A stretch of DNA of 35,288 nt from positions 1 to 35,288 of the forward strand of contig NIVC01004775.1 in the NCBI GenBank assembly GCA_002269645.1, read 5' to 3'. The stretch is from Macrostomum lignano (taxonomy: Eukaryota). The stretch's first letter is position 1, and the number at the start of each line of letters is the position of its first letter. The translations under genes and the position numbers were made by a program. Below, piece by piece: positions 7,031 to 33,609 of the stretch. Below the pieces are notes generated by a model, which saw only the letters and a program-made list of their open reading frames with translations, was not told the origin of the DNA and did no database searches.

Positions 7031-7436
7031 GATGAGATAAGTGGAGAGTGAGACTCTCACTAATGAGATAAGTGGAGAGTGAGAGTCTCACTAATGAGAT
7101 TAAGTGGTGAGTGAGAGTCTCACAAATGAGATAAGTGGAGAGTGAGAGTCTCACTAATGAGATAAGTGGAGAGTGAGAGTCTCACTAATGAGATTAAGTG
7201 GAGAGTGAGAGTCTCACTAATGAGATAAGTGGAGAGTGAGAGTCTCACTAATGAGATTAAGTGGAGAGTGAGAGTCTCACTAATGAGATAAGTGGAGAGT
7301 GAGAGTCTCACTAATGAGATAAGTGGAGAGTGAGAGTCTCACTAATGAGATTAAGTGGAGAGTGAGAGTCTCACTAATGAGATAAGTGGAGAGTGAGAGT
7401 CTCACTAATGAGATAAGTGGAGAGTGAGAGTCTCAC
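7031..7436. repeat. 31/32-bp minisatellite (GTGGAGAGTGAGAGTCTCACTAATGAGAT[T]AA)n in PIGS intron 3
   Basis: Tandem units visible. 31- and 32-bp units largely alternate to give a 63-bp dimer; each unit has an internal palindrome AGTGAGA-G-TCTCACT. Confidence 0.95.
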
Positions 7437-7493
7437 GAGAGCCCTTAAGACTCTTCAATCATTGTCGTCAGCATCCCTGTCTCGATCGCCCAG

Positions 7494-7875
7494 ATCCTCA
7501 GACGGCAGCCACTACTATTACGATGAGTCAGCTCTGCCAGACTTACTAAACAGCCTGGAGCCCTACGTCCAGACAGCCGTGAGTTCGAATCCACAGCTCA
7601 GCCTGCTAATCTACGTGCCACCAGCCGCGCATTCACCGCTGCGACTCTACGGACCCGACGGTCGGCCTGTCAGCGTCAACGCTCTGGTGAGCGCCCGCTG
7701 GGGCGGCGTGTACTTTTATAATCCGCCGTCTGGCGAGAGCTGGCCCAACGGTCGGCACCGGGTCAACATGACCGAGGCGATGGCGGGCCTGCTGCCGCAG
7801 CTAAAAGCTCTTCTGGGACTGCGCAGACAGCTGCCAAGGATTTACCTGCCTTTGGAGCCGCCAGGATACAGTCAG
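7494..7875 (+). CDS. PIGS: PIG-S exon 4
   Basis: Acceptor CCCAG| at 7493. Encodes LPDLLNSLE..LSLLIYVPPAAHSPLRLY..NALVSARWGGVYFYN, matching the PIG-S LYVP..HSPL..NAF.SPRWGGI..YN motif. Donor CAG|GTGAGG at 7876. Confidence 0.92.
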
Positions 7876-7924
7876 GTGAGGGTGCTCTGTTGCTGGCCTG
7901 GGTGTATTGTAGATTGCTTTGAGC

Positions 7925-8372
7925 AGATTGAAGGTTAGCTTGACCAGATTGTATATTGGTTTGACCAGATTAAAGATTACTTTGACCAGATTTTTGGTCT
8001 GACCAGATTGAATTTGCTCTGACCAGATTGTAGATTGTTTTGACCAAATTGAAGATTGCTTTGAACATATTGAAGGTTGGCTTGACCAGATTGTAGATTG
8101 GTTAGACCAATTGTAGATTGGTTTCAGCAGATTGTAGATTGGTTAGACCAGATTGTAGATTGGTTTCAGCAGATTGTAGATTGGTTAGACCAGATTGTAG
8201 ATTACTTTGGCCAGAATGAAGCTTGCTCTGACCAGATTGTAGATTGGTTAGACCAGATTGTAGATTACTTTGACCAGATTGAAGCTTGCTATGACCAGAT
8301 TGTAGATTGGTTTGAGCAGATTGAAGCTTGCTATGACCAGATTGTAGATTGGTTTGAGCAGATTGTAGGTTA
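7925..8372. repeat. About 21-bp minisatellite (GACCAGATTGTAGATTGGTTA-like) in PIGS intron 4
   Basis: Repeated GACCAGATTG(T/A)AGATTG units. Confidence 0.9.
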
Positions 8373-10419: not shown

Positions 10420-11632
10420 TTACTGGTGCCGTGAGTTGTACACAATTGTGCATTTCAGCAGCTGCTTGCTGTACTGTGCACTCGTTTTCGCCACTTTGTA
10501 GCTGCTGTCCCAGAGGCGACTGAAGTCCGCATGCACAGCCTCACTTGCCTGCTCCGACCAGAATCCAAGGCCATGCAGAGCTGATCCAGGCATTTGCGGC
10601 TGGTTGCGAAGAAATAGAGCAACATGCTCAAAGACAGCATGGACTTTAGGGCTGACAGGAATGCCAACATCCTTGTAGGCCGCAGCAAATGCCTTTATTG
10701 CTGCATCGTAGCCGTCTAGAAGCACCAGTCCAAAACAAGTCCTACAGACTTCACGAAAGGTGCGAAGGGCTTGTACAATAGGCATGGCTGCTATGGCACC
10801 GCAGTCTTGCAGCATTTGCTCAAGTGAGTCGACACTGTTTAGCAGCTTGCTGCAGTGGTTGCCAGTAAACTGCCCACCTTGATATGGTGCCTGCCAGATG
10901 TTTAAACGATTAGCAAAGTCCTGTGCTCGTATTGTACAGTTGGAGATTGACTGTAATTGAGAATCAAGCTCCTTGAACAGCCGATTGACAATACCTAGCA
11001 TCAAGTGCAACTCCATTGGAGGCACAACGTTGATCACCAAAGTCTTGTCTGGAAAATCAAGCAGCGGCATTCTAACACAATTCTTGAACCTGGCAGCCGA
11101 GTGCCTTGTGCTACTTGTCTGCTGCACCAGCTCTTGGTAGCTATTAGCATTCTGTCTTATGCTGCCAAATGACCGCAAGGGAACTTCATGATGCATGCTA
11201 CAGAATTCTTTGCAGTTCAACTCGCACCATGGACAGGGGTGACTGCTGCTGGCACACTGGAGGCCAAGTAGTGTGTTAGCCATCTTCATGTCAACAGCAA
11301 GACTGAAGCGTACCTGTTGCAGTCTCAGAAGGTCCAGGACAGCCTTGATGTTGAAGTAGGACTCTCGAACATCTTCGACAATTGCAAGGATCAGCAGTTT
11401 TTTTCACTCCACTATCACAGAAACGAGAACTGCATGCGGCAACAGAATAGCTTGTTTTTGTTTTAGGTTGTTGCTCTGCTCCAATTTGCACAATAGTGAG
11501 ACAGACCTTCAAGAAGTTGCCTCCTCCATCTATGCCAATTTTAACTTCAAAGTTTTCTTCTTCAATGCAGCAGTGGTACAGAAGGCTATCAATGAGTCCC
11601 TCCGGGTCCTTGCAGTATACAACGTGTCTCAT
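10420..11632 (-). pseudogene. DDE transposase catalytic core (RAG1/Transib/Chapaev-like), N-terminally truncated, one frameshift
   Basis: Motifs KIGIDGGGNFLKVC (D1), AVDMKM (D2), CPWC, PPMELHLMLG, FTGNHCSKLL, KVHAVFEHV and GFWSEQASEAVH (E). ORFs 11291-11632 and 10420-11289 join by removing one base from the 7-nt A run (plus-strand T at 11398-11404), giving ...DSGVKKLLILAIVEDVRESYFNIKAVLDLL... Confidence 0.85.
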
Positions 11633-12745: not shown

Positions 12746-13159
12746 CTAAATAGCCAGAAATGACGTAACTTAAGGAGCTGTGTCAAATAGAGTTGTTTTA
12801 TTATTTCAATCTAAACTTATTGTATATGTTGTATAGATTTAAGGCTTAAAAGCGAAGAAAATTAATTACAAATAAATACGACAGAGATAAAAAACTTTAA
12901 AAATTCGGGAGTTCCTTGTACGAGGCAATATTTGTTCAATTAGGAACAGAAAAATTTTTACTGAGCATACTACTTCATAGCTACAGTACATGTATGCATT
13001 AATATGCAATCTAAAGGAATCTTCAATAGAAACTGCACTACTGTAGCTGCGATAGAGAAAGTAAGCATGTTTAAATAAGTTTAAATAGCTTTAAAAAGTA
13101 AGTACAGTAAGTATAATCTGGCCTGCATAATGTCGATGAGAAAAGACTGACTGCTCATG

Positions 13160-13956
13160 TTAACTGCACAGAGAGGCGACCACCTGAGCGATGTTCACCT
13201 TGCCGAAGACTTCACCGTTGCCGCCTGTCGCTCCCGTGGCCTGCTTGCCGGATGAGCTCGCGTAGCTGCCACCGCCGCCTCCGTAGCCGTCATCGCTGTC
13301 GCCGGATCCTCCGCAACCGCCAGAGAAGCCGCCTCCTCCACCGCCGCCTCCACCGCGGCCGTCAGGAGGGACTCCATCGTTGTTGCCGCCTCCGCCACCT
13401 CCGCCGTAGCCGCCGAAGCCGTTGCTGCCCGTTCCCGCGTTGCCGCCGGCCCAGCTGCCGCCGATGCCTCTTCCACCGTGGCCTCCGCCATTGCCAGTGG
13501 CTTGAGCTGTTCCATCTGAGCTCCAGCCAGCTCCGCCCGCGCCAGAGTTATCGTTGCTGTCTCCGTCACCGCCTTGTCCGTCGGATGTGCCGCAAGAGCC
13601 TCCGGTGCTGCTTGTTCCGTCCTTACCGATCGACGAGGAAGACTCGGCGCCGCCGCCTCCTCCGCCACCGGCCGCCAGCAGCAGCGTGTTGGGGCCGGTT
13701 GTGTACACAAAGCTGCCTCCTCCTCCGCCTCCTCCACCGCTGCTGCCGCTGTTTCCCGGCTTGCCAACAACAAGCGTGAGAGTTTGCGACGTGGTCAGCA
13801 TGAAATTGGCGCTCTTGAATGCGCCTCTGCCGCCGTTCGCGTTAGCGGATGACTTGCCGCCTCTGGCGCCCCAAGCCGAGATTTGATAGCAGCCGTCGGT
13901 CGGCGGAGTGAAAGTCTGCACCGATCCAGTTTGGTTGCTCGAGTCCGACGGAGGAG
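13160..13956 (-). CDS. Copy 1 exon 2: ALK/LTK-type glycine-rich domain
   Basis: 103-nt intron 13957-14059 ending TTCTTCCAG|. Encodes TGSVQTFTPPTDGCYQISAWGARGG...GGRGA..LTLVVGKPG..GGGGGSFV...LLLAAGGGGG, the pattern of the ALK/LTK glycine-rich family. Spliced product is 449 aa. Confidence 0.85.
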
Positions 13957-14059
13957 CTGGAAGAAGTTCCATGTGTTGTATTGCTATAATCTGATACAGT
14001 GTTCGCTAATGGCACCCATGACCCGGCATTTAGATCGGAAGATCTCATGCTCAACTTAC

Positions 14060-14612
14060 CATGAAATGCGGTTTGTGCAGTGGTTGTTGTTTGGGTTGTA
14101 GTTGTAGTTGGTGTTGTAGTTGTAGTTGGTATTGTAGTTGTAGTTGGTGTTGTAGTTGTAGTTGTAGTTGTAGTTGGTGTTGTAGTTGTAGTAGTAGTTG
14201 TAGTTGTAGTTGTAGTTGGTGTTGTAGTTGTAGTAGCAACTGCTCCAGTCGAGGCTGCAGTTGTGGCTGCAGTGTCGCTCGTGGACGCGCACGCTGCCCG
14301 ATCTCGAAGCGTCTGCGTGTCGCACGCTGGCCCGCCAGTGCTCTGCCACTTCAGCAGCAGGTCGCAGCTGTTGCCAAGGACGCAGGATTTGTTGCCAGGC
14401 AGGTATTGGTAGACGGAGCACATGCTGGTGTTGACCGCGCACTCAACCGCGCACACTCGAGAGTCAACAACTCCGAGCACTTTGCGCTGGTGGCCAGCAG
14501 CCGGGTCCGCCTCCGCGAAGCACAGGTCCGGCCTCTTGTCGAAGACGAAGGTCTCACCGGCAGCTCGAGAGCTCCAGATGGCCACGATGACGGCAATGCT
14601 CGATAAAGACAT
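14060..14612 (-). CDS. Secreted PAN/apple-like + Thr-rich + glycine-rich protein, copy 1, exon 1
   Basis: ATG at 14612, hydrophobic signal MSLSSIAVIVAIWSSRAAG. Cys domain C..(CAVEC)..CSVYQY..CVLG.SC..C resembles PAN/apple, followed by a poly-Thr stalk. Donor CATG|GTAAGT, phase 1. Confidence 0.82.
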
Positions 14613-15271
14613 TTTGGAAGGCCGTCCAGTAAGTAGGAATGAGAAGGCAGCACTGAGTGAGAGGCTGTGAGCTTGAGAATCTCAACAAACTGGGGAAGTA
14701 GCGCAGACCCGATGCAGTCAAACTCTGCTTTAGTAGGAAAGTCTATTGTCTTGGGGCCTGCCTAATGTTTCCATTGAAACTTTGAGAAACAAACTGACAG
14801 AGGGAAACATGTGAGAGAGCGAGAAAGGAGGGGAGGGAGAGCGGGGAAAGGTGGGGACGTAGAGCGAGAGGGGAGAAAATAAAGACCAGTCGTGGGAATG
14901 GGTTGGGTCCTCCGCAAAAACGACGTGGAAAAATGGTTCTCTTTAGAAATCTCTACTCATGAGGATAAGTTGATCGATGCCGCTAAAGTACCGAGTTTGG
15001 GGTACAAGCGCACATTTTGACCATCGCACGTATTTCAAAGAATTATTGCGTTAAATAGCGAATTTTTTAATCAGTGCTCCTTATCAACTATGGAGAAGTG
15101 ATTTTAATACTTCCAGCTCCATGTTAAGAGCTCGTTTATGCGGCCATCGCACGTGGTTACTATTCACGGATTCTACTTTTTTTGTCGCCTTTGTACATTT
15201 CTTGGAGGATTTTTACAACTAGCCTACTAGAAGTGGTAAGATGAAGCTATATAAAGCAAGCTGTCAGAATT

Positions 15272-17584
15272 GCGTTCCTGCGCGTGGCAGGTACGCAACC
15301 CGGAGACAAGCACAGCTCGACCACGTGCTCGTGCGTTTCCGTGAGCGTCGTCGCGCCGTCAACTGCCGCACCATCACGCCGCTGGCTCTGCGGTCCGATC
15401 ACCGGCTCCTCATCTGCGACCTCAACCTTTGCGATCCGCTCTACCGTCCGCCGAAGCGGCCACCGCGGTGCTACTACCGCGCGCTCAGAGCCACCGATAC
15501 GCAGCGTCGCTTTGCTAGCGCCTTTAACACCGCGCTGGGCGACAAGCGTGGAAGTGCCGAGTATGCGGAAGTGTGCGCTGCAGTCAGAACCACCGCGGAG
15601 CAAGTAGTCCCGATGATGCAACCGGCTCAACGTGGGCAGCCGGTCTGGCAGGACGACCCTGCGATTCAGGCAGCGAGGAAAGATCTGGAGAGGCTCCGCT
15701 TGAGCAGGCGACCAACCCGCGAGGCAGAGGCAGCTCTGGCGGCTGTCTACCTGCAGCGCCAACAAGCGGCTGTCGATGACGCCATTCAGGCTGTCTCTGC
15801 CGCTGGGCCCGATGCCAGAGGCGCGTGGCCTGGTCCGCCATCAACGCTCTGACGGGGCGAAAGCGGCGAAATCCGCTGAACCTGGCTGGTGACACTCCGG
15901 ACGAGCGCAGGAACGAGCTGCGCGAGTTCTTCGCCGCCATCGTCAACGCGCCGCCACCCCGCTGCCAGACAGTCTGACGCTGCCGCCGGAGACGCCGTTG
16001 CCGGCAGAGAAGAGTTTCAGCGTAGCCCCAGTCAACGCAGCCGACGTTGTCAAGCTCGCCCAGCAGTCACCGGGCGGGAAAGCGCTGGGTCCGGACGAGG
16101 TGCCCATCGAGGCGCTGCGCATCCCCTGTGTGGCCGCTGAGGTCGCCAGAGTGATGAACCGCGTGCTCTTCGGTGAGGCGGCGCCCAACGAATGGACCAC
16201 GGCACACATCGGCGCACATCGTCGCTGTTCCAAAGAAGCCGGGCACCACTAGGCTTGAAGACCATCGAGGCATCTGCCTTCAGTCCTGTGCAGCGAAGCT
16301 GTTCAACCGGATGCTGCTTTCGCGGTTGCAGCCCGTGCTGGATCCGTACCTGCGCCCAGAGCAGAACGGGTTCCGGCCCATCGCGGCACAGTGGCGCAGA
16401 TCCTGGCTCTTCGCCGAGTCATCGAGGAGGCGCGGATTCGCCAGTCGATCCTGATTCTAATCTTTATTGATTTCAAGAAGGCATTCGACTCGGTTGTCAG
16501 AGCCGTGCTTCCAATGGTGCTCCGCGCGTACAACGTGCCTAAGCAGCTGATCTCGCCATCATGGCGATGTACCGTGATACGACAGCTGCTGTGACAACAC
16601 CGGATGGCCTATCGGACTCCTTTGAGACATCCTCCGGAGTGCTTCAGGGAGATACGCTGGCGCCGTTCCTGTTCGTCCTGGTGCTTGACTGGGTGCTGCG
16701 GATTGCTCTTCCTACCGACGACGACGGTTTTCTGCTGCGGCGACGCGTGGGTCGACGTCAACCGGAGAAACGGCTCAGCGTGCTTGGCTACGCCGACGAC
16801 CTCGCCTTGCGGTCCTCGACCGTCGAGGGCACCCAACGGCAGCTGGACACGCTAGTTGCCGTTGCGGCGAGCGTCGGCCTGGTGGTCAACACGCAGAAGA
16901 CCGTTGTGCTCTGCGTGCCGGACGACATCGAGACTGTAATATTCTGCCGAGGCACTGACGGGCAGGCGACCGAACTCCCGCGATGTCAGCAGTTCGTCTA
17001 CCTCGGCGGTCTGGTTCCAGACGCTCGCGAGGACCTGCGACGCCGCCGCGGGCTTGCCTGGGCTGCCTTTCGTTCTGTGAGGGCAGTCCTGCAGTCCGAG
17101 GCCCTACCGACCGCCAGAGGGCGGCGCTGTTCCAGGCGGTAATCGAGACCGTCCTGCTGTACAACGCCGAGACCTGGACGCTGACGGACTCACTCGAACA
17201 GCAAGTTGATGCGGCGCACGCTGGCCTGCTGCGCGTCGCCTTCAACATCGGCGTCGAGCGAGTCACCAACGCGGCACTCTATCGCCGCGCTGGCCTGCCA
17301 CGTCCAAGCGATCTACTGCGCCGTCGGCGACTCCAGCTCGCAGGCCATCTCATCCGCGCCGAGTCGTACTGCCCACAGCCGGTGCAGGAGGTGCTGCTGC
17401 TCACGCTGCAGGCACCCTACCGGCGAGGACAAGCGCGAACTCGGCGTTATGTCGACTGTCTGCTGGCTGACGCCGGCGCCCCGGACACTGCCTGTGGTGC
17501 GGCCTTTGTTCGCGCCCAAGCCATGAAGCGCGCCCTGTGATGCTGACTTTTGCCATCCTGACAGCGTATTTTGTTGTTTGTTGT
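15272..17584 (+). mobile_element. 5'-truncated non-LTR retrotransposon of the RTE/RTEX type with several frameshifts
   Basis: AP-endonuclease C-terminus (QLDHVLV..SDHRLL), RT motifs (GPDEVP, HRGICLQS.AAKLFNRMLLSRL, EQNGFR, FIDFKKAFDSV, GVLQGDTLAPFLF, YADD) and RTE-type tail (LLYNAETWTL, RRRRLQLAGH). Ends in a (TTG)n-like tail. 10-bp TSD TGTCAGAATT at 15262-15271 and 17585-17594. Confidence 0.93.
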
Positions 17585-17693
17585 TGTCAGAATTTTATTT
17601 AATACGCAATACTCAATTTTTGGACCATGACTACTTTGGAATTCTCAATGGATAAGCGCTAATGTGCTGTACGTAATAAAGGACAGGTAGGTT

Positions 17694-17920
17694 GGGTTGT
17701 AGCCTTAGGTTATAGGTTGGAGCGTTGGACTCACAACTAAAAGGTCGGGGGTTCGATTCCTGACCCACTCGGAACAATTCGTGTCTTTGAGCAAGACACT
17801 TAACTCTGCATTGCTTCAGTTCACCCAGCTGTAAAATGGGTGCCAGCATTAGCTGGGGTAATTGAGGCTGTGTGTGGCGACCCCCCAGTCCTTGCACTGA
17901 ACAGCCGTGGACAGGTGTAG
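17694..17920 (+). mobile_element. tRNA/CORE-type SINE copy with an internal deletion in its 3' part
   Basis: B box GGTTCGATTCC and CORE-like block nearly identical to 2738-2945, then jumps directly to CAGGTGTA. Confidence 0.85.
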
Positions 17921-18112
17921 TGTAGTAAGATATTTAATTAGGCTGATGTAACTAACCACGCTTTGGTCGCGGGATAGGGCAGGGGAACTTTTTCGAGAAG
18001 TGCCGCCCATCACCGTGCACCTCTTGCGCAGAGCCGTCGCGCAAGTATGCAAGCTGATTGTTTTCCAGTGTTTGTAACAATAAAAAATGACGAGTATCAG
18101 TGCGCGCTCATG

Positions 18113-18903
18113 TTAACTGCACAGAGAGCCGTCCACCTGAGCGATGCTCACCTTGCCGAAGACTTCACCGTTGCCGCCTGTCGTTCCCGCGGCCTGCTTG
18201 CCGGATGAGCTCGCGTAGCTGCCGCCGCTGCCTCCGTAGCCGTCATCGCTGTCGCCGGATCCTCCACAACCGCCAGAGAAGCCGCCTCCTCCGCCGCCGC
18301 CTCCATTGTCACCATCGTTGTTGCCGCCTCCTCCGCCTCCGCCAAAGCCGCCGAAGCCGTTGCTGCCGGTTCCCGCGTTGCCGCCGGCCCAGCTGCCGCC
18401 GATGCCTCTTCCACCGTGGCCTCCGCCATTGCCAGTGGCTCGAGCTGCTCCGTCTGAGCTCCAGCCAGCTCCGCCCGCGCCAGAGTTATCGTTGCTGTCT
18501 CCGTCACCGCCTTGTCCGTCGGATGTGTCGCAAGAGCCTCCGGTGCTGCTTGTTCCGTCCTTACCGACCGACGAGGAAGACTCGGCGCCGCCGCCTCCTC
18601 CGCCACCGGCCGCCAGCAGCAGCGTGTTGGGGCCGGTTGTGTACACAAAGCTGCCGCCTCCTCCGCCTCCTCCGCCTCCTCCGCCGCTGCTGCCGCTGTT
18701 TCCCGGCTTGCCAACAACAAGCGTGAGAGCTTGCGACGTGGTCAGCATGAAATTGGCGCTCTTGAATGCGCCTCTGCCGCCGTTCGCGTTAGCGGATGAC
18801 TTGCCGCCTCTGGCGCCCCAAGCCGAGATTCGATAGCAGCCGTCGGTCGGCGGAGTGAAAGTCTGCACCGATCCAGTTTGGTTGCTCGAGTCCGACGGAG
18901 GAG
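18113..18903 (-). CDS. Copy 2 exon 2: ALK/LTK-type glycine-rich domain
   Basis: 103-nt intron 18904-19006, open frame to TAA. Spliced product is 491 aa. Confidence 0.85.
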
Positions 18904-19006
18904 CTGGAGGGAGTTCCGTATGTTGTATTGCTATAGTCTGATACAGTGCTCGCTAATGGCACCCATGACCCGGCATTTAGATCGGAAGATCTCATGCTCA
19001 ACTTAC

Positions 19007-19691
19007 CATGAAATGCGGTTTGTGCAGTGGTTGTTGTTTGGGTTGTAGTTGTAGTCGTAGTTGTAGTTGTAGTTGGTGTTGTAGTTGTAGTTGGTGTTGT
19101 AGTTGTAGTTGGTGTTGTAGTTGTAGTAGTAGTTGTAGTTGGTGTTGTAGTTGTAGTTGGTGTTGTAGTTGTAGTTGATGTTGTAGTTGTAGTTGGTGTT
19201 GTAGTTGTAGTTGGTGTTGTAGTTGTAGTTGGTGTTGTAGTTGTAGTTGGTGTTGTAGTTGTAGTTGATGTTGTAGTTGTAGTTGTAGTTGGTGTTGTAG
19301 TTGTAGTTGTAGTAGCAACTGCTCCAGTCGAGGCTGCAGTTGTGGCTGCAGTGTCGCTCGTGGACGCGCACGCTGCCCGATCTCGAAGCGTCTGCGTGTC
19401 GCACGCCGGCCCGCCGGTGCTCTGCCACTTCAGCAGCAGGTCGCAGCTGTTGCCAAGGACGCAGGATTTGTTGCCAGGCAGGTATTGGTAGACGGAGCAC
19501 AAACTGGTGTTGACCGCGCACTCAACCGCGCACACTCGAGAGTCAACAACTCCGAGCACTTTGCGCTGGTCGCCAGCAGCCGGGGCCGCCTCCGCGAAGC
19601 ACAGGTCCGGCCTCTTGTCGAAGACGAAGGTCTCACCGGCAGCTCGAGAGCTCCAGATGGCCACGATGACGGCAATGCTCGATAAGGACAT
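19007..19691 (-). CDS. Secreted PAN-like + Thr-rich + glycine-rich protein, copy 2, exon 1
   Basis: Paralog of copy 1 with a longer (PTTTTT)n stalk. ATG at 19691, donor CATG|GTAAGT, 685 nt, phase 1. Confidence 0.82.
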
Positions 19692-20970
19692 TTTGGAAGG
19701 CCGTCCAGTAAGTAGGAATGAGAAGGCAGCACTGAGTGAGAGGCTGTGAGCTTGAGAATCTCAAAAACTGGGGAAGTAGCGCAGACCCGATGCAGTCAAA
19801 CTCTGCTTTAGTAGGAAAGTCTATTGTCTTGGGGCCTGCCTAATGTTTCCATGGAAACTTTGAGAAACAAACTGACAGAGAGAAAATGTGAGAGAGTGAG
19901 AGAGGAGGGGAGCGAGAGTGGGAAACGAGAGGCCACAGTAGCGTACGAGCGTAGCTTGAAATGGGAGGCGATAATGGGAGGGGATAACTCCTGATGGGGA
20001 GATAAAAGCTGTAAATGTTAGAAAACGCAAAAAGACTCAGTTTTTGTTAAAGTCTGTGCCACAAAAATTTCTACCAATGGGGGGCTTATCACGGTCTACT
20101 GAGAGACGAGTCTTAAGAATGGATGGGTGCTCTGCAACAAACGACTTGGCAAACTTTCTATAGTAATCTCTATTCGTGAAGGCACTTAGCGTCGTTACCC
20201 AAAGAACTTCTCTTTTGAGGGAAGGCTATCCATTAGCGGTCGATATTTCAGCTCTTCCATTTTAAGCTGATGTTAAATGAGACCCATGGTATGCCTGGCG
20301 CGCCATCAGTGTTGGGGGGTGGTGCATATTTTCTTTCTAGTTTTAGGCTTGCTGACAGAACCATACTGAAGGCACTACGGGCGACAAAGCATTTAAGGCA
20401 AGAGAGATTTCAGGCAAAGAATCGACTGAATCCGTCGGGAAGTTATATAAAAGCCCTCTAAAAGCCAGAAAAACAAAATTATTAGTGAATTGACCTTGTC
20501 AGAGACCATTTTGGTAGTCAATGAGCTGCCAATAGCACTGATGATACTGGCACAGAGAATTTCGATTGGACACCACTTAAAAATATCTCCCTCGCCTCTG
20601 TAATATTCTTCACTTTTGTTGTTGCTTGTTACGTCAGTGATGTGACTCAATAGCTCGTTCACGCTGCCATGAAATCACACATAGGATGTACAAAGATACA
20701 GCAGCTTGTGAACGAGTCGTGTGATTACGCAAATATTGGGCTCCTGTGATGGCAGCGCCGAAGTAGCTTTGAACTGAGCTGCATTTACATGTAGATGTCT
20801 TCAACATGACTTTACATGTCTTTAACTATTTAACAGGGTAGCGCTTTCTTTGACTCTAACGCAGAAACTGCTCTATAGTGCATATACGGTGCTGACGGTG
20901 GCAGACAGGCGGCCTTGATGTTGCTACCTCTTCGGTCTCGTGCCGCATATGTTGCGCTTGGGCTCTCAGA

Positions 20971-22120
20971 CCGACAGATGGAAGACTGCATGCTCGAGAT
21001 CCGACAGATGGGAGACTGCATGCTCACATGTTCGAGATCCGACAGATGGGAGACTACATGCTCACATGTTCGAGATCCGACAGATGGGAGACTGCATGCT
21101 CACATGTTCGAGATCCGACAGATGGGAGACTGCATGCTCACATGTTCGAGATCCGACAGATGGAAGACTGCATGCTCGAGATCCGACAGATGGGAGACTG
21201 CATGCTCACATGTTCGAGATCCGACAGATGGAGACTGCATGCTCACATGTCGAGATCCGACAGATAGGGAGACTGCATGCTCACATGTTCGAGATCCGAC
21301 AGATAGGAGACTGCATGCTCACATGCTCGAGATCCGACAGATGGGAGACTGCATGCTCACATGCTCGAGATCCGACAGATAGGAGACTGCATGCTCACAT
21401 GCTCGAGATCCGACAGATAGGAGACTGCATGCTCGAGATCCGACAGATAGGAGACTGCATGCTCACATGCTCGAGATCCGACAGATAGGAGACTGCATGC
21501 TCACATGCTCGAGATCTGACAGATGGGAGACTGCATGCTCGAGATCTGACAGATGGGAGACTGCATGCTCGAGATCCGACAGATAGGAGACTGCATGCTC
21601 ACATGCTCGAGATCTGACAGACAGATAGGAGACTGCATGCTCGAGATCCGACAGATAGGAGACTGCATGCTCACATGCTCGAGATCTGACAGATGGGAGA
21701 CTGCATGCTCACATGCTCGAGATCTGACAGATGGGAGACTGCATGCTCGAGATCCGATGCTGCATGAGATCCGACAGATAGGAGACTGCATGCTCACATG
21801 CTCGAGATCCGACAGATGGAGACTGCATGCTCGAGATCCGACAGATGGAGACTGCATGCTCGAGATCCGACAGATGGGAGACTGCATGCTCGAGATCCGA
21901 TGCTGCATGAGATCCGACAGATGGGAGACTGCATGCTCGAGATCTGACAGATGGGAGACTGCATGCTCGAGATCCGACAGATAGGAGACTGCATGCTCGA
22001 GATCCGATGCTGCATGAGATCTGACAGATGGGAGACTGCATGCTCGAGATCCGACAGATAGGAGACTGCATGCTCACATGCTCGAGATCCCACAGATGCG
22101 AGACTGCATGCTCGAGATCC
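20971..22120. repeat. 30/38-bp minisatellite (GAGATCCGACAGATGGGAGACTGCATGCTC[ACATGCTC])n
   Basis: Tandem units directly visible. Confidence 0.96.
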
Positions 22121-22362
22121 TTCTCAACCGTGCATTCCCATGTGCAGATTGCGAACTTCTGGAATCTGCATTCCGGCAGTTGGAGGAGCCCAAAAGCCTG
22201 ACACTGTCCCATACCGACCCATTGCATGATGTAGTCACACAGCTACAACTTGTGTGATCGCTGAAAGCTATAGAGAGTCTCCGTATTAACGTGGTTCATT
22301 CTATAAGAATTTACTTCAAATAAGAGAGTTTTATTGACATAAGTTCCCGAAGGATTCAGTCG

Positions 22363-23332
22363 ACAGCTACAACTACAACTACAACACCAACTACAGCTAC
22401 AACCCAAACAACAACCACTGCACAAACCGCATTTCATGGTAAGTTGAGCATGAGATCTTCCGATCTAAATGCCGGGTCATGGGTGCCATTAGCGAACACT
22501 GTATCAGATTATAGCAATACAACACACGGAACTCCCTCCAGCTCCTCCGTCGGACTCGAGCAACCAAACTGGATCAGTGCAGACTTTCACTCCGCCGACC
22601 GACGGCTGCTATCGAATCTCGGCTTGGGGCGCCAGAGGCGGCAAGTCATCCGCTAACGCGAACGGCGGCAGAGGCGCATTCAAGAGCGCCAATTTCATGC
22701 TGACCACGTCGCAAACTCTCACGCTTGTTGTTGGCAAGCCGGGAAACAGCGGCAGCAGCGGCGGAGGAGGCGGAGGAGGCGGAGGAGGCGGCAGCTTTGT
22801 GTACACAACCGGCCCCAACACGCTGCTGCTGGCGGCCGGTGGCGGAGGAGGCGGCGGCGCCGAGTCTTCCTCGTCGATCGGCAGAAACGGAACAAGCAGC
22901 ACCGAAGGCTCTTGCGGCACATCAGACGGACAAGGCGGTGACGGAGACAGCAACGATAACTCTGGCGCGGGCGGAGCTGGCTGGAGCTCAGATGGAGCAG
23001 CTCAAGCCACTGGCAATGGCGGAGGCCACGGTGGAAGAGGCATCGGCGGCAGCTGGGCCGGAGGCAACGCAGGGACGGGTAGCAACGGCTTCGGCGGCTT
23101 CGGCGGAGGCGGTGGAGGCGGCAACAACGATGGTGACAATGGAGGCGGCGGCGGAGGCGGCGGCTTCTCTGGCTGTTGCGGAGGATCCGGCGACAGCGAT
23201 GACGGCTACGGAGGCGGCGGCGGCAGCTACGCGAGCTCATCCGGCAAGCAGGCCACGGGAGCGACCGGCGGCAACGGTGAAGTCTTCGGCAAGGTGAACA
23301 TCGCTCAGGTGGACGGCTCTCTGTGCAGTTAA
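22363..23332 (+). pseudogene. Glycine-rich gene copy 3, 5'-deleted (no ATG, signal peptide or PAN domain); intron and exon 2 intact
   Basis: Only the end of the Thr stalk remains (22363-22438). Donor at 22439, acceptor at 22540-22541, exon 2 at 22542-23332 open to TAA. Confidence 0.8.
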
Positions 23333-24540
23333 CATGAGCACTCAGTCATTAGTTTGCTACTGTTTAAAAAATACAGGAAAATAAGGGGCTTGTGAATTGG
23401 ATCAACTATTTGAAGGAACGCCGTTTTTTATTAATTTCATGTTTTAATGTACCAACCGACAAACTGACTAACTTCCTTTGATGGTATAAATTAGATTTCT
23501 TCCTTTTTGAGTATATTTATGATTAAATATTTTTATTATATTTAATTTTGCTTGCAACCTAGGGTGATCGATCTTTCTAATTAAATATTGAATATAAAAT
23601 TCGTTTATTCACAAAGCCAGCCAAGCTTTGTTTGACTTTCTCTGCTGGTTTTGTGCTGTTCAGTTGTGAATTATGATTTATGCAGCCATGGCCATATTTG
23701 CCGTAATCCACTGACCCATGTTAATAAGCTTGAGTGCTTTGTCTGAAAAATTAAACTTTTTTTCTTGAAAGACTTGATCCTTTCTCTGAACGTTTTCATG
23801 TAAAAAGCTATCCGAGTTTTGCTACTTACAGTAGGGTGACACGTATTTCTGAACTGGTTTTGTTGAACTGGAATAAACGGGCGAGTCAGTCTGATGCAGT
23901 GATTATTCTTTAAGTTTTTTTCTAAAGGAAAGATCATTCGAGTTCTGTAGTCAATCAGCTGCCACTGGCCCCAATCCCTCAAACTATGATACTGCTGGCA
24001 TGGGAGTTTCGTTTAGAAACCGTAACTAAAACACTTGTAGAACACCCCAGCTGATGGGCGCTTTTTCCCACATAATGTTTGCTCTGGCTCGATCACAGAC
24101 TTGAATCGCCAGCACGGGCTGCTACCATTTATTTTCATCGGCTTGTAGCTGAAAGATGCGATGCGCATAGGAAATGCTAGCACTCGTAGAAAAAATTAAA
24201 GTTGAGCTTGATAAACACATTTTGGCGTTTGTCAGCCACGAACCAATAAGCCAGTGATCCGTCTCAGCCATAACAGTGGCGTTGCAGCGACTCTAACCGG
24301 ACGCAATGAGCAAGGAGCCAGCCAAAACAGCAGGCGATCCAACAAAGTCTGCGGGACGAGGGAGAGCCAAGTCGGCTACAATCTCTGCAAGCCGCAATGG
24401 AGCAGCTCGGCCAAGAAGAAGAAGGCGTCAGGTAAGCCTGGAAGCAAGTCGTTCAGTGATTCGTACAGCAGGTTCATGACATTGCCGGGATATTTGCAGC
24501 GGAGACACGCGCGGCTCTCAAGTGGAGATGAATTACTCAA

Positions 24541-25730
24541 TGTGCCCTTCAACTCTGCCCTTCAACTGTATCCTTCCACTGTGCCCTTCCACTGTGCACT
24601 TCAACTGTGACATTCCACTGTGCCCTTCAACTGTACCCTTCCACTGTATCCTTCCACTGTGCCCTTCCACTGTGCCCTTCAACTCTGCGAACCCACTGTA
24701 CCCTTCCACTGTACCCTTCCACTGTACCCTTCCACTGTGCCCTTCCACTGTGCACTTCAACTGTGACATTCCACTGTGACATTCCACTGTACCCTTCCAC
24801 TGTACCCTTCCACTGTGCCCTTCCACTGTGCACTTCAACTGTGACATTCCACTGTGCCCTTCCACTGTACCCTTCCACACTGTGCCCTTCCACTGTGCCC
24901 TTCCACTGTACCCTTCCACACTGTGCCCTTCAACTGTGACATTCCACTGTGCCCTTCCACTGTGCCCTTCCACTGTACCCTTCCACACTGTGCCCTTCCA
25001 CTGTGCCCTTCAACTGTGACATTCCACTGTGACATTCCACTGTGCCCTTCCACTGTGCCCTTCCACTGTGCCCTTCCACTGTGACATTCCACTGTGCCCT
25101 TCCACTGTGCCCTTCCACACTGTGCCCTTCCACTGTGCCCTTCAACTGTGACATTCCATTGTGACATTCCACTGTGCCCTTCCACTGTGCCCTTCCACTG
25201 TGACATTCCACTGTGACATTCCACTGTGCCCTTCCACACTGTGCCCTTCAACTGTGACATTCCACTGTGCCCTTCCACACTGTGCCCTTCCACTGTGCCC
25301 TTCAACTGTGACATTCCACTGTGACATTCCACTGTGACATTCCACTGTGCCCTTCCACTGTGCCCTTCAACTGTGACATTCCACTGTGACATTCCACTGT
25401 GACATTCCACTGTGCCCTTCCACTGTGCCCTTCCACACTGTGCCCTTCCACTGTGCCCTTCAACTGTGACATTCCACTGTGACATTCCACTGTGCCCTTC
25501 CACTGTGCCCTTCAACTGTGACATTCCACTGTGACATTCCACTGTGCCCTTCCACTGTGCCCTTCAACTGTGACATTCCACTGTGACATTCCACTGTGCC
25601 CTTCCACTGTGCCCTTCAACTGTGACATTCCACTGTGACATTCCACTGTGCCCTTCCACCGTGCCCTTCCACTGTGCCCTTCAACTCTGCGAACCCACTG
25701 TAACCTTCCACTGTACCCTTCCAATGTGCC
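24541..25730. repeat. 13-bp minisatellite (CCACTGTGCCCTT / CCACTGTGACATT / CAACTGTGACATT)n
   Basis: Tandem 13-mer variants. Confidence 0.96.
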
Positions 25731-26401
25731 CAGCACTGATCGCACAGCTTTTAGATCCTTCCAAAGCCTGACTCAAGCGTGAAGAAGTCACAGAGCCATA
25801 ACGTTGCTATAGAGAGTAAATAGCTCATATTAACGTGTTTCAGTTTATTAGAGAAAGACTGCTTAATAAAATATACTCGAATAGGTGAACGCTGCCTTTT
25901 GCTAGAGAATTTAAAGAGAAACCACAGCATCAGAATGACTCGCCTATTTATTTAAGTTTAACAAAACCAATTTGCAGTTGCTAATTCACGTCACCCTACT
26001 ATAAGTAGTGAAACTTTTATATAAAGACATTCGAAAAAAATCAAATTGTACCAGAACAAAATTTTTATTTTTGTGACAAAGCACTCAAGCTTGTTACCAT
26101 GGGTCAGTGGATTACGGCTAATATGGTCATGGCTGCATAAATCATAATTCAGAACTGAGCAGTACAAAAGAGAAAGTCAAACGATAATAAATTGGCTTTG
26201 TGAAAAAAATATTTAATCAAAAATATATTCAGAAAGTAAGAAGTCTTAATTGTACGATTGCAAAGTTGCTGGTTTGTCACTAAACATCTTCCAACCCAAC
26301 ATTAATTCAAATGACGTTCCTTCAAATAGTTGATCCAATTCACAAGCCCATTATTTTCCTGTATTTATAAACAGTAGCAAACTAATGACTGAGTGCTCTT
26401 T

Positions 26402-27483
26402 TTAACTGCACAGAGAGCCGTCCACCTGAGCGATGCTCACCTTGCCGAAGACTTCACCGTTGCCGCCTGTCGTTCCCGCGGCCTGCTTGCCAGATGAGCT
26501 CGCGTAGCTGCCACCGCCGCCTCCGTAGCCGTCATCGCTGTCGCCGGATCCTCCGCAACCGCCAGAGAAGCCGCCGCCTCCGCCGCCGCCTCCATTGTCA
26601 CCATCGTTGTTGCCGCCTCCGCCGCCTCCGCCGTAGCCGCCGAACCCGATGCTGCCCGTCCCTGCGTTGCCGCCGGCCCAGCTGCCGCCGATGCCTCTTC
26701 CACCGTGGCCTCCGCCATCACTAGTGGCTTGAGCTGCTCCGTCTGAGCTCCAGCCAGCTCCGCCCGCGCCAGAGTTATCGTTGCTGTCTCCGTCACCGCC
26801 TTGTCCGTCTGATGTGCCGCAAGAGCCTTCGGTGCTGCTTGTTCCGTTTCTGCCGATCGACGAGGAAGACTCGGCGCCGCCGCCTCCTCCGCCACCGGCC
26901 GCCAGCAGCAGCGTGTTGGGGCCGGTTGTGTACACAAAGCTGCCGCCTCCTCCGCCTCCTCCGCCTCCTCCGCCGCTGCTGCCGCTGTTTCCCGGCTTGC
27001 CAACAACAAGCGTGAGAGTTTGCGACGTGGTCAGCATGAAATTGGCGCTCTTGAATGCGCCTCTGCCGCCGTTCGCGTTAGCGGATGACTTGCCGCCTCT
27101 GGCGCCCCAAGCCGAGATTCGATAGCAGCCGTCGGTCGGCGGAGTGAAAGTCTGCACTGATCCAGTTTGGTTGCTCGAGTCCGACGGAGGAGCTGGAGGG
27201 AGTTCCGTGTGTTGTATTGCTATAATCTGATACAGTGTTCGCTAATGGCACCCATGACCCGGCATTTAGATCGGAAGATCTCATGCTCAACTTACCATGA
27301 AATGCGGTTTGTGCAGTGGTTGTTGTTTGGGTTGTAGTTGTAGTCGAGACAGTAGATGATGCCGTGGTCCCGCACGCTGCCCTCCGCGAAGCACAGGTCC
27401 GGCCTCTTGTCGAAGACGAAGGTCTCACCGGCAGCTCGAGAGCTCCAGATGGCCACGATGACGGCAATGCTCGATAAGGACAT
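26402..27483 (-). pseudogene. Glycine-rich gene copy 4: PAN domain deleted with frameshift; exon 2 intact
   Basis: Exon 1 (27483-27296) is 188 nt, 3n+2 rather than 3n+1. The deletion joins CFAE.. to the AAC.. segment at a GCC microhomology near 27380. Intron 27193-27295; exon 2 at 27192-26402 is open. Confidence 0.8.
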
Positions 27484-28665
27484 TTTGGAAGGCCGTCCAG
27501 TAAGTAGGAATGAGAAGGCAGCACTGAGTGAGAGGCTGTGAGCTTGAGAATCTCAACAAACTGGGGAAGTAGCGCAGAGCCGATGCAGTCAAACTCTGCT
27601 TTAGTAGGAAAGTCTATTGTCTTGGGGCTGCCTCACGTTTCCTTGGAAACTTCGAGAAACAAACTGAAATAGAGAAAAAGAGAGCGCTCCCCCGCTTAAG
27701 TCCACCTGAGGCGGTAATTTATTGCATCGTTTGCGGGTGCTTAACAGCTGTACTGAGTTTGAGTTTGAGTTTAAGCCAAGCAAGCCAGAATTCTTATAAA
27801 TTAAACAGGTCTCCTTCTTTGCTTTTCTGTGGCACGCCTGCAACAAAGTATGCAGTCAATGCAAGCCTGGATGCTGACTGTTCTAGTAACATTACATGCA
27901 TAATAATGAGCTGGAGCTGCCGTCAGCCAAATGTTTAAGCTTGAGTCTCTGCCTGTGCAAGTACGTCAATACTAAATTGACTTGCATTACTGATTGCTTT
28001 GTACTTTTTGAATTAGTGCGCGCAACTTTGCAATAGAACATGCTGATTCAGTATTTTTTAAGAATAGGTAAATAAAAATATCATAGAATCGCTACTAGCC
28101 TACTAACAGTACTACTAACAGAATAAAAGCTGTTATATCTTTTTTGTGATCTAAATTTTACTTGTAATAAGACGAGTCCTTGACTAGCGAGGAGGTAAAT
28201 AAGAAGGCCGTTGCCTTTGACCGCAACGCATGGTGTACAGGAGCCCTGGCTTTCCAATCGCCAGCTGTTTAATACTATTGGTGATCATTATCACTGCAGA
28301 GGTGAATATTTAGTTCCTAGTGCGATTGCACCTTTACCTTCCTCGTTTCCAAACCCACTGCACTTGGAAGGCCTGGCGAGAGAATTCCCCAGATCCTTGA
28401 GACGCGCCCCCCCCCAACTGAGGATTTGAGAACTCAAACCTCGCCATGCCCTCCTCTACTCTTGCTAAATCGATTCTAATGACCGGCCGACAGTTGGAGC
28501 CGAGGAGAGAGAGAGAGACTTGGCTTTGGCTGGCTTTCAATCACATTTCAAGCAGGCGCATGCGCGGCCACGGCACACACGCAGCCACTCGTTCACCCGA
28601 TTCAAGTGATTTGGCTCCGCTGTCCCACTCTCAGATCAATTCTGAGAACACTTATGTACGTTTTG

Positions 28666-29030
<365 letters not shown>

Positions 29031-29052
29031 GGACTGTAGATATCTAGTCTGT

Positions 29053-29180
29053 TTGGTGCCAAGGGAGACGGGTGGCGCCAAGGGGGACCGGGTGGCGCCA
29101 AGGGAGACTGTATGGCGCCAAAGGAGGCTGTATGGCGCCAAGGGAGACTGTATGGCGCCAAGGGAGACTGTATGGCGCCA
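29053..29180 (+). repeat. 20-bp tandem array (GGCGCCAAGGGAGACTGTAT)n
   Basis: About 6 units; an inverted counterpart lies at 29740-30017. Confidence 0.9.
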
Positions 29181-29739
29181 TACCCGAGAAGACTGCGGAC
29201 CAGTTAGCTGCATTTGAGCAGCCTTTCAGTCACTCTATTTTTATAATTTCTAGAAGAAACTTTTCAGACCCCTGAACTGAGTGGTCTGGTCAGCGCAGTG
29301 ATTGAGCAGAATCTAGAAATCCCTATTTTGCTTGCAAACCCCCCGAGGAAATGCAAACTTTGGAACGCCAAAATGCAAAAGCTCGCCTGCCATTTCCCTG
29401 AACTTAAGCTTTTAGTCGCCTCAGCCAATGCCAATAAGGCTATTCCAACTGCACCAAGACAGTGATCAGGGGCGTCTAAAAATTCCATTACGAAACACGA
29501 ATCTGGAACCCGATAGCTCGTGCGGAAGTAAACCTCGATTGTTTTAAGTCAAAGAAGTCCCTTACTCCAGCCAGGGAAAAGTTCATTTAGTTTCAATTTC
29601 CGGGAATATTTTTCGGGTTCTTCGCGGCCGCTAAATCAACTCTGCAGTCAATTAACGCTCAGTTCTGTCGCTGCCCAGCGATATTCTCCAGAGTGACTTG
29701 CACTCAGGTAAGTCATAGGTATCTTGAACCCACTCTTAG

Positions 29740-30669: not shown

Positions 30670-30680
30670 TCACTCATCAC

Positions 30681-32237: not shown

Positions 32238-32274
<37 letters not shown>

Positions 32275-33265: not shown

Positions 33266-33297
<32 letters not shown>

Positions 33298-33529: not shown

Positions 33530-33561
<32 letters not shown>

Positions 33562-33577
33562 AGTCAGTCCGTCAGTC

Positions 33578-33609
<32 letters not shown>

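Follow-up and report, generated by a model that had tools for sequence, protein, structure and literature searches.

The window analyzed here, 35,288 nucleotides of Macrostomum lignano DNA, contains a small tandem cluster of two intact (A and B) and two decayed (C and D) gene copies. The intact genes and their parts, by position in the window, are as follows.

13160..14612, minus strand: gene A, intact, two exons, 449 aa (spliced translation and ORFs)
14612..14060, minus strand: gene A exon 1
14556..14612, minus strand: gene A predicted signal peptide (MSLSSIAVIVAIWSSRAAG), the sole hydrophobic segment
14283..14534, minus strand: gene A PAN/apple-like module, aa 27-110, with core C54, C58, C65, and C77
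14060..14267, minus strand: gene A Thr/Pro mucin-like stalk, aa 116-185, ACA/ACT repeats, 69% Thr
13957..14059, minus strand: gene A intron, 103 nt, GTAAGT..CCAG, phase 1, splice sites kept in all four copies
13160..13956, minus strand: gene A exon 2, the entire ALK/LTK-type TG (TNF-like plus Gly-rich) domain, SLCS tail, and stop
14613..14849, minus strand: gene A 5' flank, conserved, resembling the B and D flanks; putative promoter and 5' UTR
18113..19691, minus strand: gene B, intact, two exons, 491 aa
19691..19007, minus strand: gene B exon 1
19362..19613, minus strand: gene B PAN/apple-like module, Pfam PAN_1 19.8 bits
19007..19346, minus strand: gene B Thr/Pro stalk, 113 aa, ~15 copies of an 18-bp unit encoding TTTTTP
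18904..19006, minus strand: gene B intron, 103 nt, GT..AG, phase 1
18113..18903, minus strand: gene B exon 2, TG/Gly-rich domain, 91% amino acid identity to A
19692..19925, minus strand: gene B 5' flank, conserved

The first-pass annotation had described two intact two-exon genes of 449 and 491 aa, each ending in SLCS. Spliced translation across the 103-nt introns bore this out, and the stop codon immediately after SLCS is kept in all four copies. The two-gene observation is real and not due to chance, since the unit occurs in duplicate with 94-95% DNA identity, exon 2 is open in all four copies with dN/dS of 0.24-0.49, and splice sites and upstream sequence are conserved. Over aa 1-115, genes A and B differ by three amino acid and four silent changes, and the gene A 5' flank is 95-96% identical to those of copies B and D across 195-237 bp. 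After the signal peptide, the cysteines total 12, an even number, with 8 in the PAN region and 4 in the Gly-rich part, the latter count agreeing with the few that had been noted there. The exact proteins encoded by A, B, and one neighboring ORF are absent from a collection of 15 billion proteins. The sole database model on the A/B locus, P0002, is a chimeric misprediction that includes antisense frames; each of its pieces matches the window at 100% identity.

The other two copies are pseudogenes.

22360..23332, plus strand: copy C, 5'-truncated pseudogene (5' part lost)
26402..27483, minus strand: copy D, pseudogene, PAN module and stalk deleted internally

Both lie outside positions 13160-19691, the region that the first-pass annotation covered. 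What is left of copy C is the intron (22439-22541), flanked by the final ~80 nt of the stalk (22360-22438) on one side and by an exon 2 that is still open (22542-23332) on the other. The exon 1 remnant of copy D (27483..27296, 188 nt) comprises the signal peptide and first 34 aa followed by the stalk tail; because this remnant is in phase 2 rather than phase 1, it is not in frame with exon 2 (27192..26402). Pseudogenes make up half of the copies in the window, and constraint on the family may therefore be relaxed. Taken further, A and B could themselves be unexpressed relics, that is, recent duplicate pseudogenes with reading frames that have not yet decayed. The clear decay of two of the four copies fits such a state, as does the absence of the exact proteins from protein collections, with only a chimeric model at the locus. 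However, A and B retain the start codon, signal peptide, all Cys, splice sites, and stop, their stalk-length changes are in frame, dN/dS is below 0.5, and transcript-based models exist for paralogs elsewhere in the genome, which makes relic status highly improbable. The locus is best explained as a birth-and-death tandem cluster of a flatworm family of small secreted glycoproteins.

The proposed order of signal peptide, PAN-like module, mucin stalk, and ALK/LTK-type Gly-rich domain, with neither transmembrane (TM) helix nor kinase, was supported. By inspection, the signal-peptide region has a short hydrophobic core (IAVIVAIW) followed by SRA/A, and the paralogs carry typical, classical signal peptides. 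This N-terminal segment gave the best 19-aa hydropathy window; with a mean KD of only 1.44 and no other hydrophobic segment, no TM helix is expected. On these sequence features, A and B are predicted to be secreted via a cleavable signal peptide. Pfam returned no kinase match in A or B, no ORF of at least 150 aa in the window was kinase-like, and the transcript-based paralog models likewise stop after the glycine-rich domain (GRD). There was also no Pfam match to EGF in A or B, and the protein stops 5-6 residues past the last strand. Lacking an EGF module, TM helix, and kinase, the A/B proteins cannot signal as receptors. A GPI anchor was considered and rejected, as the tail past the last strand is only ~5 residues.

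Between the two folded parts, the stalks span 71 aa in A and 113 aa in B, consistent with the length difference reported at first pass, and are 69-77% Thr and 8-9% Pro. Tandem repeats cover 14095-14234 in A and 19042-19313 (period 18) in B. The stalks thus show the Thr/Ser/Pro-dominated tandem repeats that define mucin-type (PTS) regions, and they behave as a variable-number tandem repeat. M. lignano produces mucin-type Gal-beta(1-3)-GalNAc glycans (PMC8621496), and the stalk composition suggests dense O-glycosylation and an extended shape.

The gene models of A and B confirm that the Gly-rich domain, 35% Gly in composition, is confined to a single exon. A phmmer search of the PDB with gene A exon 2 retrieved LTK at E = 1.1e-5, and a 37-sequence family profile that includes A retrieved ALK (7n00, E = 7.4e-34), LTK (1.1e-31), and Caenorhabditis elegans SCD-2 (3.6e-20), with matches spanning nearly the whole domain. 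AF2 run without templates gave a TG model with pLDDT 87.9 and pTM 0.89, in which eight strands surround a 140-residue region that has no helices or strands yet is confidently modeled. When this model was searched against the PDB with Foldseek, ranks 1-21 were all LTK, ALK, or SCD-2 (E 1.4e-12 to 3e-6), with TM of 0.60-0.66 and identity of 22-28% to LTK/ALK; the next match had E = 0.067, and only weak phage tail/fiber matches (E = 0.07-0.6) lay below ALK/LTK. The structure prediction suggested at first pass as a check on the ALK/LTK-type assignment therefore came out in its favor. A direct hmmscan did not report PF12810 (ALK_LTK_GRD) for A or B; the scores of paralog fragments against it are 34-41 bits (cutoff, 24.5), and membership of A and B in this family comes through those fragments, the A-containing profile, and the structure match. 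We assign exon 2 to the TG domain, and the proteins to a signal peptide-PAN-stalk-TG architecture, with high confidence. Two Cys are conserved family-wide, C207 at the TG start and C448 at the C terminus; they probably pair in a disulfide that would staple both ends of the TNF-like sandwich.

A domain of this composition invites the thought of a structural matrix protein, in which the Gly-rich domain and terminal Cys would polymerize into secreted material with no specific partner, such as rhabdite/mucus rods, eggshell, or a stylet- or cuticle-like matrix. The 35% Gly and the conserved C-terminal Cys are in keeping with this idea, as are a family fragment automatically named "Loricrin" in UniProt and the variation in copy number and stalk length, which is common in structural secretions. 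However, the Gly-rich part is predicted to be compact, confidently folded, and globular rather than a low-complexity fiber, the Cys total of 12 is even, and both family-wide GRD Cys are positioned for intradomain pairing. We consider a matrix role fairly unlikely.

A and B have the fold and sequence family of their TG domain in common with the ALK/LTK receptor tyrosine kinases (PDB 7nx1, 7nx0, 7nwz, 7n00, and 7lrz; SCD-2, 7lir), a family defined in PMC10605310. These receptors additionally have MAM, LDLa, and heparin-binding parts, an EGF-like module, a TM helix, and a kinase, all missing from A and B, whereas in A and B a PAN module and mucin stalk stand before the TG domain and the long insertion after the VVGxxG strand is missing. 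The first-pass annotation had raised a decoy receptor, i.e., a soluble decoy or trap for an ALK-type ligand, which would suit a fold that is the ligand-binding TG domain of ALK/LTK. With identity of only 22-28%, a TG domain equally close to phage/bacterial versions, and neither the ALK insertion nor the membrane-proximal EGF-like module, this proposal has a very slim chance of being correct. ALKAL ligands are not known outside vertebrates.

More local is the likeness to the snow-flea antifreeze protein and the phage S16 gp38 adhesin, in which a Gly-rich polyglycine-II (PGII) secondary-structure motif has been described (PMC13243192). This motif is all that A and B have in common with them: both proteins lack the TNF-like sandwich of the A/B TG domain, and neither is among the 50 PDB matches listed by Foldseek for the TG model.

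The PAN/apple-like reading of the N-terminal module stood in part. In its favor, the C54-x3-C58-x6-C65-x11-C77 pattern is kept in all paralogs, which UniProt labels "Apple domain-containing protein," and the best matches are mostly of the PAN type; against it, the module fell below threshold in every test. Pfam PAN_1 (PF00024) scored 19.7 bits for A (E = 7.6e-4) and 19.8 bits for B, under the 21.4 cutoff, and a homolog search with a PAN-only profile gave no matches. The AF2 model has a strand, helix, and hairpin core at pLDDT 69-79 within a whole model of low confidence (pLDDT 54). Foldseek and PDB-profile searches returned mostly PAN modules as best, if weak, matches (E 0.045-3), among them the HGF N domain, plasminogen, MIC4, SML-2, SRK, and FXI, with apicomplexan microneme lectin PAN modules ranking near the top. 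We consider it likely that the module is of the PAN/apple type.

The closest relatives of A and B are uncharacterized M. lignano paralogs in UniProt/UniRef, whose gene models derive from a genome-guided RNA-seq transcriptome (PMC5730564). P0085 (403 aa; PAA61162.1/PAA91998.1, BOX15_Mlig019850g2/g1) and P0093 (373 aa; PAA57358.1, Mlig028980g1) both have the order signal peptide-PAN-GRD. Like A and B, they contain the signal peptide, the PAN Cys pattern, and the N- and C-terminal GRD Cys; unlike A and B, to which they are ~45-48% identical, they have no Thr stalk. Two family fragments, P0094 and P0146, carry an Asp/Tyr-rich linker in contrast to the Thr stalk of A and B. The GRD of P0085 and P0093 is a terminal exon behind a phase-1 intron, in the same phase and position as in A. 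A word-indexed homolog search was swamped by poly-G/poly-T words, such that the full query gave 69 matches and missed the true paralogs; with Gly and Thr runs masked, P0002 was the sole match.

PAN and GRD also occur together in corals, namely in Porites harrisoni ABFA07_017308 and ABFA07_017842 and in a partial protein from Pocillopora meandrina. There, a single protein of secreted type has both PAN_1 and PF12810 above the Pfam thresholds. Where A and B have the mucin stalk, the coral domains are separated by a COLFI-like segment and/or EGF modules; the coral GRD has an extra insertion, and overall identity to the flatworm protein is 25%. As in A and B, the PAN exon of the Porites protein P0014 ends in phase 1, and a phase-1 intron precedes the one terminal exon that encodes its GRD. 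An hhalign comparison of flatworm and coral PAN profiles aligned the core at E = 0.0012 with a probability of only 19%, and homology beyond both being PAN is not demonstrable. The PAN-mucin-TG architecture, which the first-pass annotation took to be undescribed, is thus real and previously unstudied but not unique to the A/B locus, given the paralogs and coral proteins in databases. We found nothing on the A/B family in the literature on non-kinase GRD proteins and on Macrostomum PAN, apple, or glycine-rich proteins, and no mention of PAN-GRD proteins in that on M. lignano seminal fluid and adhesion.

Beyond animals, most of the 3,167 GRD relatives are apparently bacterial; bacterial matches carry PEP-CTERM, T9SS, or pilin-like sorting signals. 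Among viruses, 53 proteins reach E <= 1e-3 (TM as high as 0.69), and phage virion structural proteins account for many of these. The earlier remark that such domains also occur in microbes therefore holds for phage virion and bacterial surface proteins with the TG fold. Bacterial PF12810 surface proteins and phage/giant-virus virion proteins resemble A and B in placing the TG/GRD fold at an exposed end; what sets them apart is their prokaryotic sorting signals or virion context and the lack of a PAN module and mucin stalk.

This distribution raises the prospect that the GRD exon entered the flatworm lineage from a bacterium or phage by horizontal transfer and was later fused to a PAN exon. Besides the bacterial majority among the relatives, the flatworm GRD lacks the insertion found in ALK and coral GRDs, and flatworm GRDs fall among probably bacterial sequences in a neighbor-joining tree. 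However, that tree, from which a coverage filter dropped many sequences, is star-like and does not resolve horizontal transfer from vertical descent, and by raw distance the sequence nearest to the flatworm GRD is coral P0014. Spliceosomal introns, eukaryotic signal peptides, and host-like flanks likewise tell against transfer, as do the PAN-then-GRD order and the phase-1 intron before the terminal GRD exon in coral, and we judge it improbable. The layout common to the paralogs and P0014 is more readily explained by exon shuffling than by recent horizontal transfer. Exon shuffling, raised as a possibility at first pass, is accordingly a plausible origin of the PAN-GRD genes, judging from a phase-1 intron before a terminal GRD exon in two paralogs and a coral gene.

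Because the TG fold is common in phage virion and bacterial surface proteins, A and B are best read as two-headed binders or adhesins that would be secreted and O-glycosylated. We advance this function tentatively, holding it on its own to be somewhat less likely than not; the combined explanation, in which architecture, TG domain, PAN module, and binder/adhesin function are taken together, receives a probability of roughly 55%. As envisaged, a cleavable signal peptide would direct export of a protein built from one PAN/apple disulfide module, a variable Thr/Pro stalk, and a C-terminal TG domain, the latter a TNF-like beta-sandwich bearing a polyglycine-II lattice. The stiff, glycosylated stalk would keep two independent binding heads apart, and the exported protein could then act as an extracellular binder or cross-linker, perhaps as an adhesin- or lectin-like component of mucus, surface coat, or gland secretion.

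A narrower version assigns the proteins to pattern recognition or defense, with the PAN lectin module and TG head binding microbial or algal surface glycans and the genes undergoing birth and death under microbial pressure. Tandem duplication with pseudogenization, a stalk that is a variable-number tandem repeat, apicomplexan microneme lectin PAN modules among the best structural matches, and the placement of the TG fold by phages on virion proteins that touch cell surfaces are all compatible with such a role. Yet dN/dS below 0.5 gives no sign of positive selection, and the proposal is a special case of the binder/adhesin explanation rather than a separate mechanism; it is, in our estimation, distinctly unlikely.

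Experimental knowledge of the ALK/LTK glycine-rich domain comes almost entirely from two receptor kinases, in which it is the cytokine-binding part; in A and B the same fold forms the C-terminal head of small proteins that are predicted to be secreted and lack a kinase. The order and phase-1 layout of the paralogs and coral gene, together with phage and bacterial use of the fold, suggest that the GRD is a general extracellular binding module that receptor kinases recruited via exon shuffling. A bolder and rather doubtful extension is that PAN-TG proteins constitute an old metazoan secreted family, assembled from phase-1 exon modules and present in cnidarians and bilaterians, and that they are related to the ALK/LTK ligand-binding domain as its non-kinase sibling or possibly its donor. 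The TG head would then be a general surface-binding module common with phage virion and bacterial surface proteins, and in Macrostomum mucin or acidic stalks would have been added and the family would have grown as part of the adhesive, mucus, or defense secretions. A binding partner of the A/B proteins would offer a first functional entry point to the thousands of GRD proteins that have no kinase and could also bear on flatworm mucus or adhesion biology, in a host that is tractable by transgenesis, RNAi, and in situ screens.

Scans of the window for Rfam families and tRNAs found none. In a blastn comparison of the window with three M. lignano loci, the sequence in common consisted only of a diverged minisatellite and the GRD.

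The two intact genes of this family lie on the minus strand, and each consists of two exons joined across a short intron.

14612 to 13160, minus strand: gene A, from the ATG to the end of the stop codon; spliced frame of 449 aa
14612..14060, minus strand: gene A exon 1, 553 nt, ending in phase 1
14059..13957, minus strand: gene A intron, 103 nt, GTAAGT...CCAG, phase 1
3' of the intron to 13160, minus strand: gene A exon 2, 797 nt, the terminal exon, encoding the glycine-rich domain (GRD)
19691 to 18113, minus strand: gene B; spliced frame of 491 aa
19691 to the intron, minus strand: gene B exon 1, 685 nt, ending in phase 1
19006..18904, minus strand: gene B intron, 103 nt, phase 1
3' of the intron to 18113, minus strand: gene B exon 2, 791 nt, the terminal GRD exon

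Spliced translation of both genes yielded the 449- and 491-residue products that the first-pass annotation had proposed. Read unspliced, exon 1 of either gene enters a shifted, meaningless frame in the ORF listing. The proposed intron is very likely real because Macrostomum lignano paralogs share an equal, transcript-supported boundary; the Mlig_3_7 GenBank gene models were built from a transcriptome that had been assembled from RNA-seq with genome guidance (PMC5730564). The duplicated unit spans 13153-14849 and 18106-19925, is 94-95% identical at the DNA level, and takes in about 200-237 bp of conserved 5' flank. Between genes A and B lies a degenerate non-LTR retrotransposon fragment (15241-17540, plus strand), in which the reverse transcriptase (Pfam RVT_1, E=9.5e-11) is split across several frames.

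Both proteins comprise a hydrophobic N-terminus, a 96-residue region with 8 Cys, a Thr/Pro stalk (71 aa in A and 113 aa in B; Thr 69-77%), and a C-terminal part of 263 residues (Gly 35%, 4 Cys) ending in SLCS. Translation and composition reproduce the initial description of the proteins in every detail, from the unequal stalks and the Cys to the SLCS terminus. The stalk of B is a tandem array of about 15 copies of an 18-bp unit encoding TTTTTP, and the length difference between the two stalks is in frame. The sole hydrophobic segment spans residues 5-13, and with a mean hydropathy of 1.44 even the best 19-residue window falls short of a transmembrane helix, so none is predicted. A stop codon directly follows SLCS in all four copies at the locus, and an ORF search of the window returned no kinase-like frame. 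Hydropathy, the conserved stop, and the window ORFs thus uphold the view that these proteins lack a transmembrane segment and a kinase.

The glycine-rich exon encodes a true ALK/LTK TG domain (TNF-like plus glycine-rich); the ALK/LTK-type glycine-rich assignment made at first reading is sustained here by profile, AlphaFold2, and Foldseek comparisons. PF12810 was not among the direct Pfam matches of A or B, likely owing to compositional bias, and phmmer against PDB sequences matched LTK at E=1.1e-5 over the first 70 residues, with ALK following at about 5e-5. A TG family profile built from 37 members, A and B included, matched ALK (E=7.4e-34), LTK (1.1e-31), and C. elegans SCD-2 (3.6e-20) across profile positions 30-277. 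Modeling of the GRD with AlphaFold2 without templates gave a mean pLDDT of 87.9 and a pTM of 0.89, with eight beta-strands split between the termini (residues 12-95 and 237-258) and a confidently modeled middle that DSSP assigned to neither helix nor strand. This is how a predicted TNF-like sandwich with a polyglycine-II lattice should look. When the model was searched against the PDB with Foldseek, ranks 1-21 were occupied solely by LTK, ALK, and SCD-2 (E 1.4e-12 to 3e-6, TM 0.49-0.66), and the first match thereafter had E=0.067. Two Cys are conserved family-wide, C207 just before the first TG strand and C448 in the C-terminal tail; these probably pair in a disulfide, fastening the two ends of the sandwich to each other.

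The module encoded by exon 1 is probably PAN-like, short of proof, and we accept this assignment because several weak lines of evidence agree. Pfam PAN_1 matched residues 41-79 of A and B at 19.7 and 19.8 bits (E=7e-4), under the 21.4 cutoff. The Cys core C54-x3-C58-x6-C65-x11-C77 is kept in all paralogs having the PAN region. An AlphaFold2 model from only 8 sequences was poor overall (pLDDT 54), with a core of strand, helix, and hairpin at pLDDT 69-79. Its best PDB matches were almost all PAN/apple modules at weak E-values (0.045-2), including the HGF N domain, plasminogen, Sarcocystis SML-2, Toxoplasma MIC4, plant SRK, and factor XI A4, and the sequence profile retrieved similar PDB proteins at E=0.15-3. 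UniProt names the M. lignano paralogs "Apple domain-containing protein." The original PAN/apple call therefore agrees with the Cys pattern, fold matches, and database names, but its scores are sub-threshold and its E-values weak.

An exhaustive HMMER search retrieved 3167 relatives at E<=1e-3. Most of them look bacterial, being either giant multi-GRD proteins or proteins whose N-termini are of T9SS, PEP-CTERM, or pilin-like type. Among these relatives, the same build was found only in M. lignano, in PAA61162.1/PAA91998.1 (Mlig019850, 403 aa) and PAA57358.1 (Mlig028980, 373 aa); several M. lignano fragments are also family members. In two such fragments, P0094 and P0146, an acidic Asp/Tyr-rich linker (DYDSDY...) takes the place of the Thr stalk of the window genes, and it is the linker that seems to evolve fast in this family. 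The exon layouts of the paralogs and of a coral gene that exceeds the threshold for both PAN_1 and PF12810 are as follows.

Mlig019850: exon 1 of 388 nt ending in phase 1, a 744-nt intron, and a single terminal GRD exon
Mlig028980: three exons, with a 791-nt terminal GRD exon behind a phase-1 intron, equal in size to that of the window genes
Porites harrisoni ABFA07_017308: exons of 304, 150, and 899 nt, two phase-1 introns, and a terminal GRD exon

The phase-1 modular layout is thus common to two phyla, which accords with exon shuffling and perhaps with descent from one PAN-GRD ancestor. Of the two origins initially suggested, shuffling is consistent with this layout; as to horizontal acquisition, a distance tree of GRDs is star-like and does not discriminate between vertical descent and horizontal transfer. 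The flatworm GRD lacks an insertion that ALK and the coral proteins have after the VVGxxG strand, so a bacterial or phage source of the domain retains a small chance.

Searching the window with tblastn revealed four copies of exon 2, so that the two intact genes first described stand beside two further copies, C and D, outside the interval originally assigned to the family.

22360-23332, plus strand: copy C, retaining the intron and exon 2 but only the final ~80 nt of stalk sequence
26402-27483, minus strand: copy D, retaining the 5' flank and, from the ATG on, the first 34 codons, then joining the stalk end

Both are pseudogenes. Copy C is 5'-truncated, with a minisatellite upstream, and copy D has an internal deletion and a frameshift: its exon 1 is 188 nt long and therefore ends in phase 2, placing exon 2 out of frame. 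The exon-2 frames are open in all four copies, with pairwise dS of 0.045-0.095 and dN/dS of 0.24-0.49, and we regard it as unlikely that the genes are unexpressed relics. Between copies, the 103-nt introns show 0-6 differences. With copies oriented minus, minus, plus, minus along the window, the locus is a young birth-and-death cluster. A 520-aa public protein, P0002 (UniParc UPI0007A34941), is a chimeric misprediction built on this locus. Segments of it are 100% identical to the window at 22657-22911, 26823-27077, 24266-24430, and 30531-30641, and across 22657-33124 the model fuses family copies and minisatellite DNA, translated partly in sense and partly in antisense. Homology searches can be led astray by a model of this kind. 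The UniParc number of P0002 falls among those of M. lignano proteins, and on these grounds the window is most likely M. lignano DNA.

Both folds and mucin stalks are well known. The literature searched held no description of PAN, GRD, and stalk combined in a kinase-less secreted protein, in keeping with the first-pass view that the architecture is no named family; the PAN-GRD combination is, however, already present, unnamed, in public M. lignano and coral protein sets. Elsewhere, the TG fold occupies exposed positions: ALK/LTK have it in the region that binds ligand, and in bacteria it occurs on proteins that bear surface-sorting signals. In viruses, the GRD model had 53 matches in BFVD at E<=1e-3 among phage and giant-virus proteins, including cyanophage and Caulobacter phage virion structural proteins. 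Many of these are automatically named "receptor protein-tyrosine kinase" though they are virion structural proteins, a systematic misannotation.

Because the TG fold is exposed in these settings and PAN modules bind proteins or glycans, we favor, at roughly one chance in three, the reading that the protein is a bivalent binder or adhesin secreted into mucus, surface coat, or gland secretion. The protein would be exported via the secretory pathway, and its stalk, densely O-glycosylated, would keep two separate binding heads apart. Core-1 type glycans are made by M. lignano (PMC8621496). A defense lectin would be a special case of this binder mechanism; a structural protein that polymerizes and a reproductive secretion are competing readings. 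ALK/LTK use the TG fold in ligand binding, and a decoy for an ALK ligand is a further, unlikely reading. The value of the family would rise sharply if a ligand or phenotype were found.

Elsewhere in the window, an open frame at 7417-7938 (plus strand), flanked by minisatellites, matches the middle of the GPI transamidase subunit PIG-S (Pfam PF10510, E=9.5e-23, profile positions 244-372 of 514) and is probably one exon of a neighboring housekeeping gene. A 289-aa ORF at 10420-11289 (minus strand), with an ATG start and the sequence MKMANTLLGLQCASSSHPCPWCELNC..., had no Pfam match and is without an identical counterpart in the protein collection; it could be an orphan gene or one derived from a transposon. 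The mini- and microsatellite load is very heavy (3711-6574, 20989-22113, 24541-25731, 28666-29030, 30680-31293, and 33122-34866), with units of 23 bp (about 124 copies), 38 bp, 13 bp (about 90 copies), (TAGA)n, 10 bp, and (AGTC)n (about 437 copies), and these arrays account for strong GC-skew blocks and long spurious ORFs. Such a load fits the M. lignano genome, 15% of which is simple and tandem repeats (PMC5730564). The first 2,000 nt of the window (1-2000) are far richer in AT, with a GC content of 0.30 versus 0.40-0.63 in the remainder.
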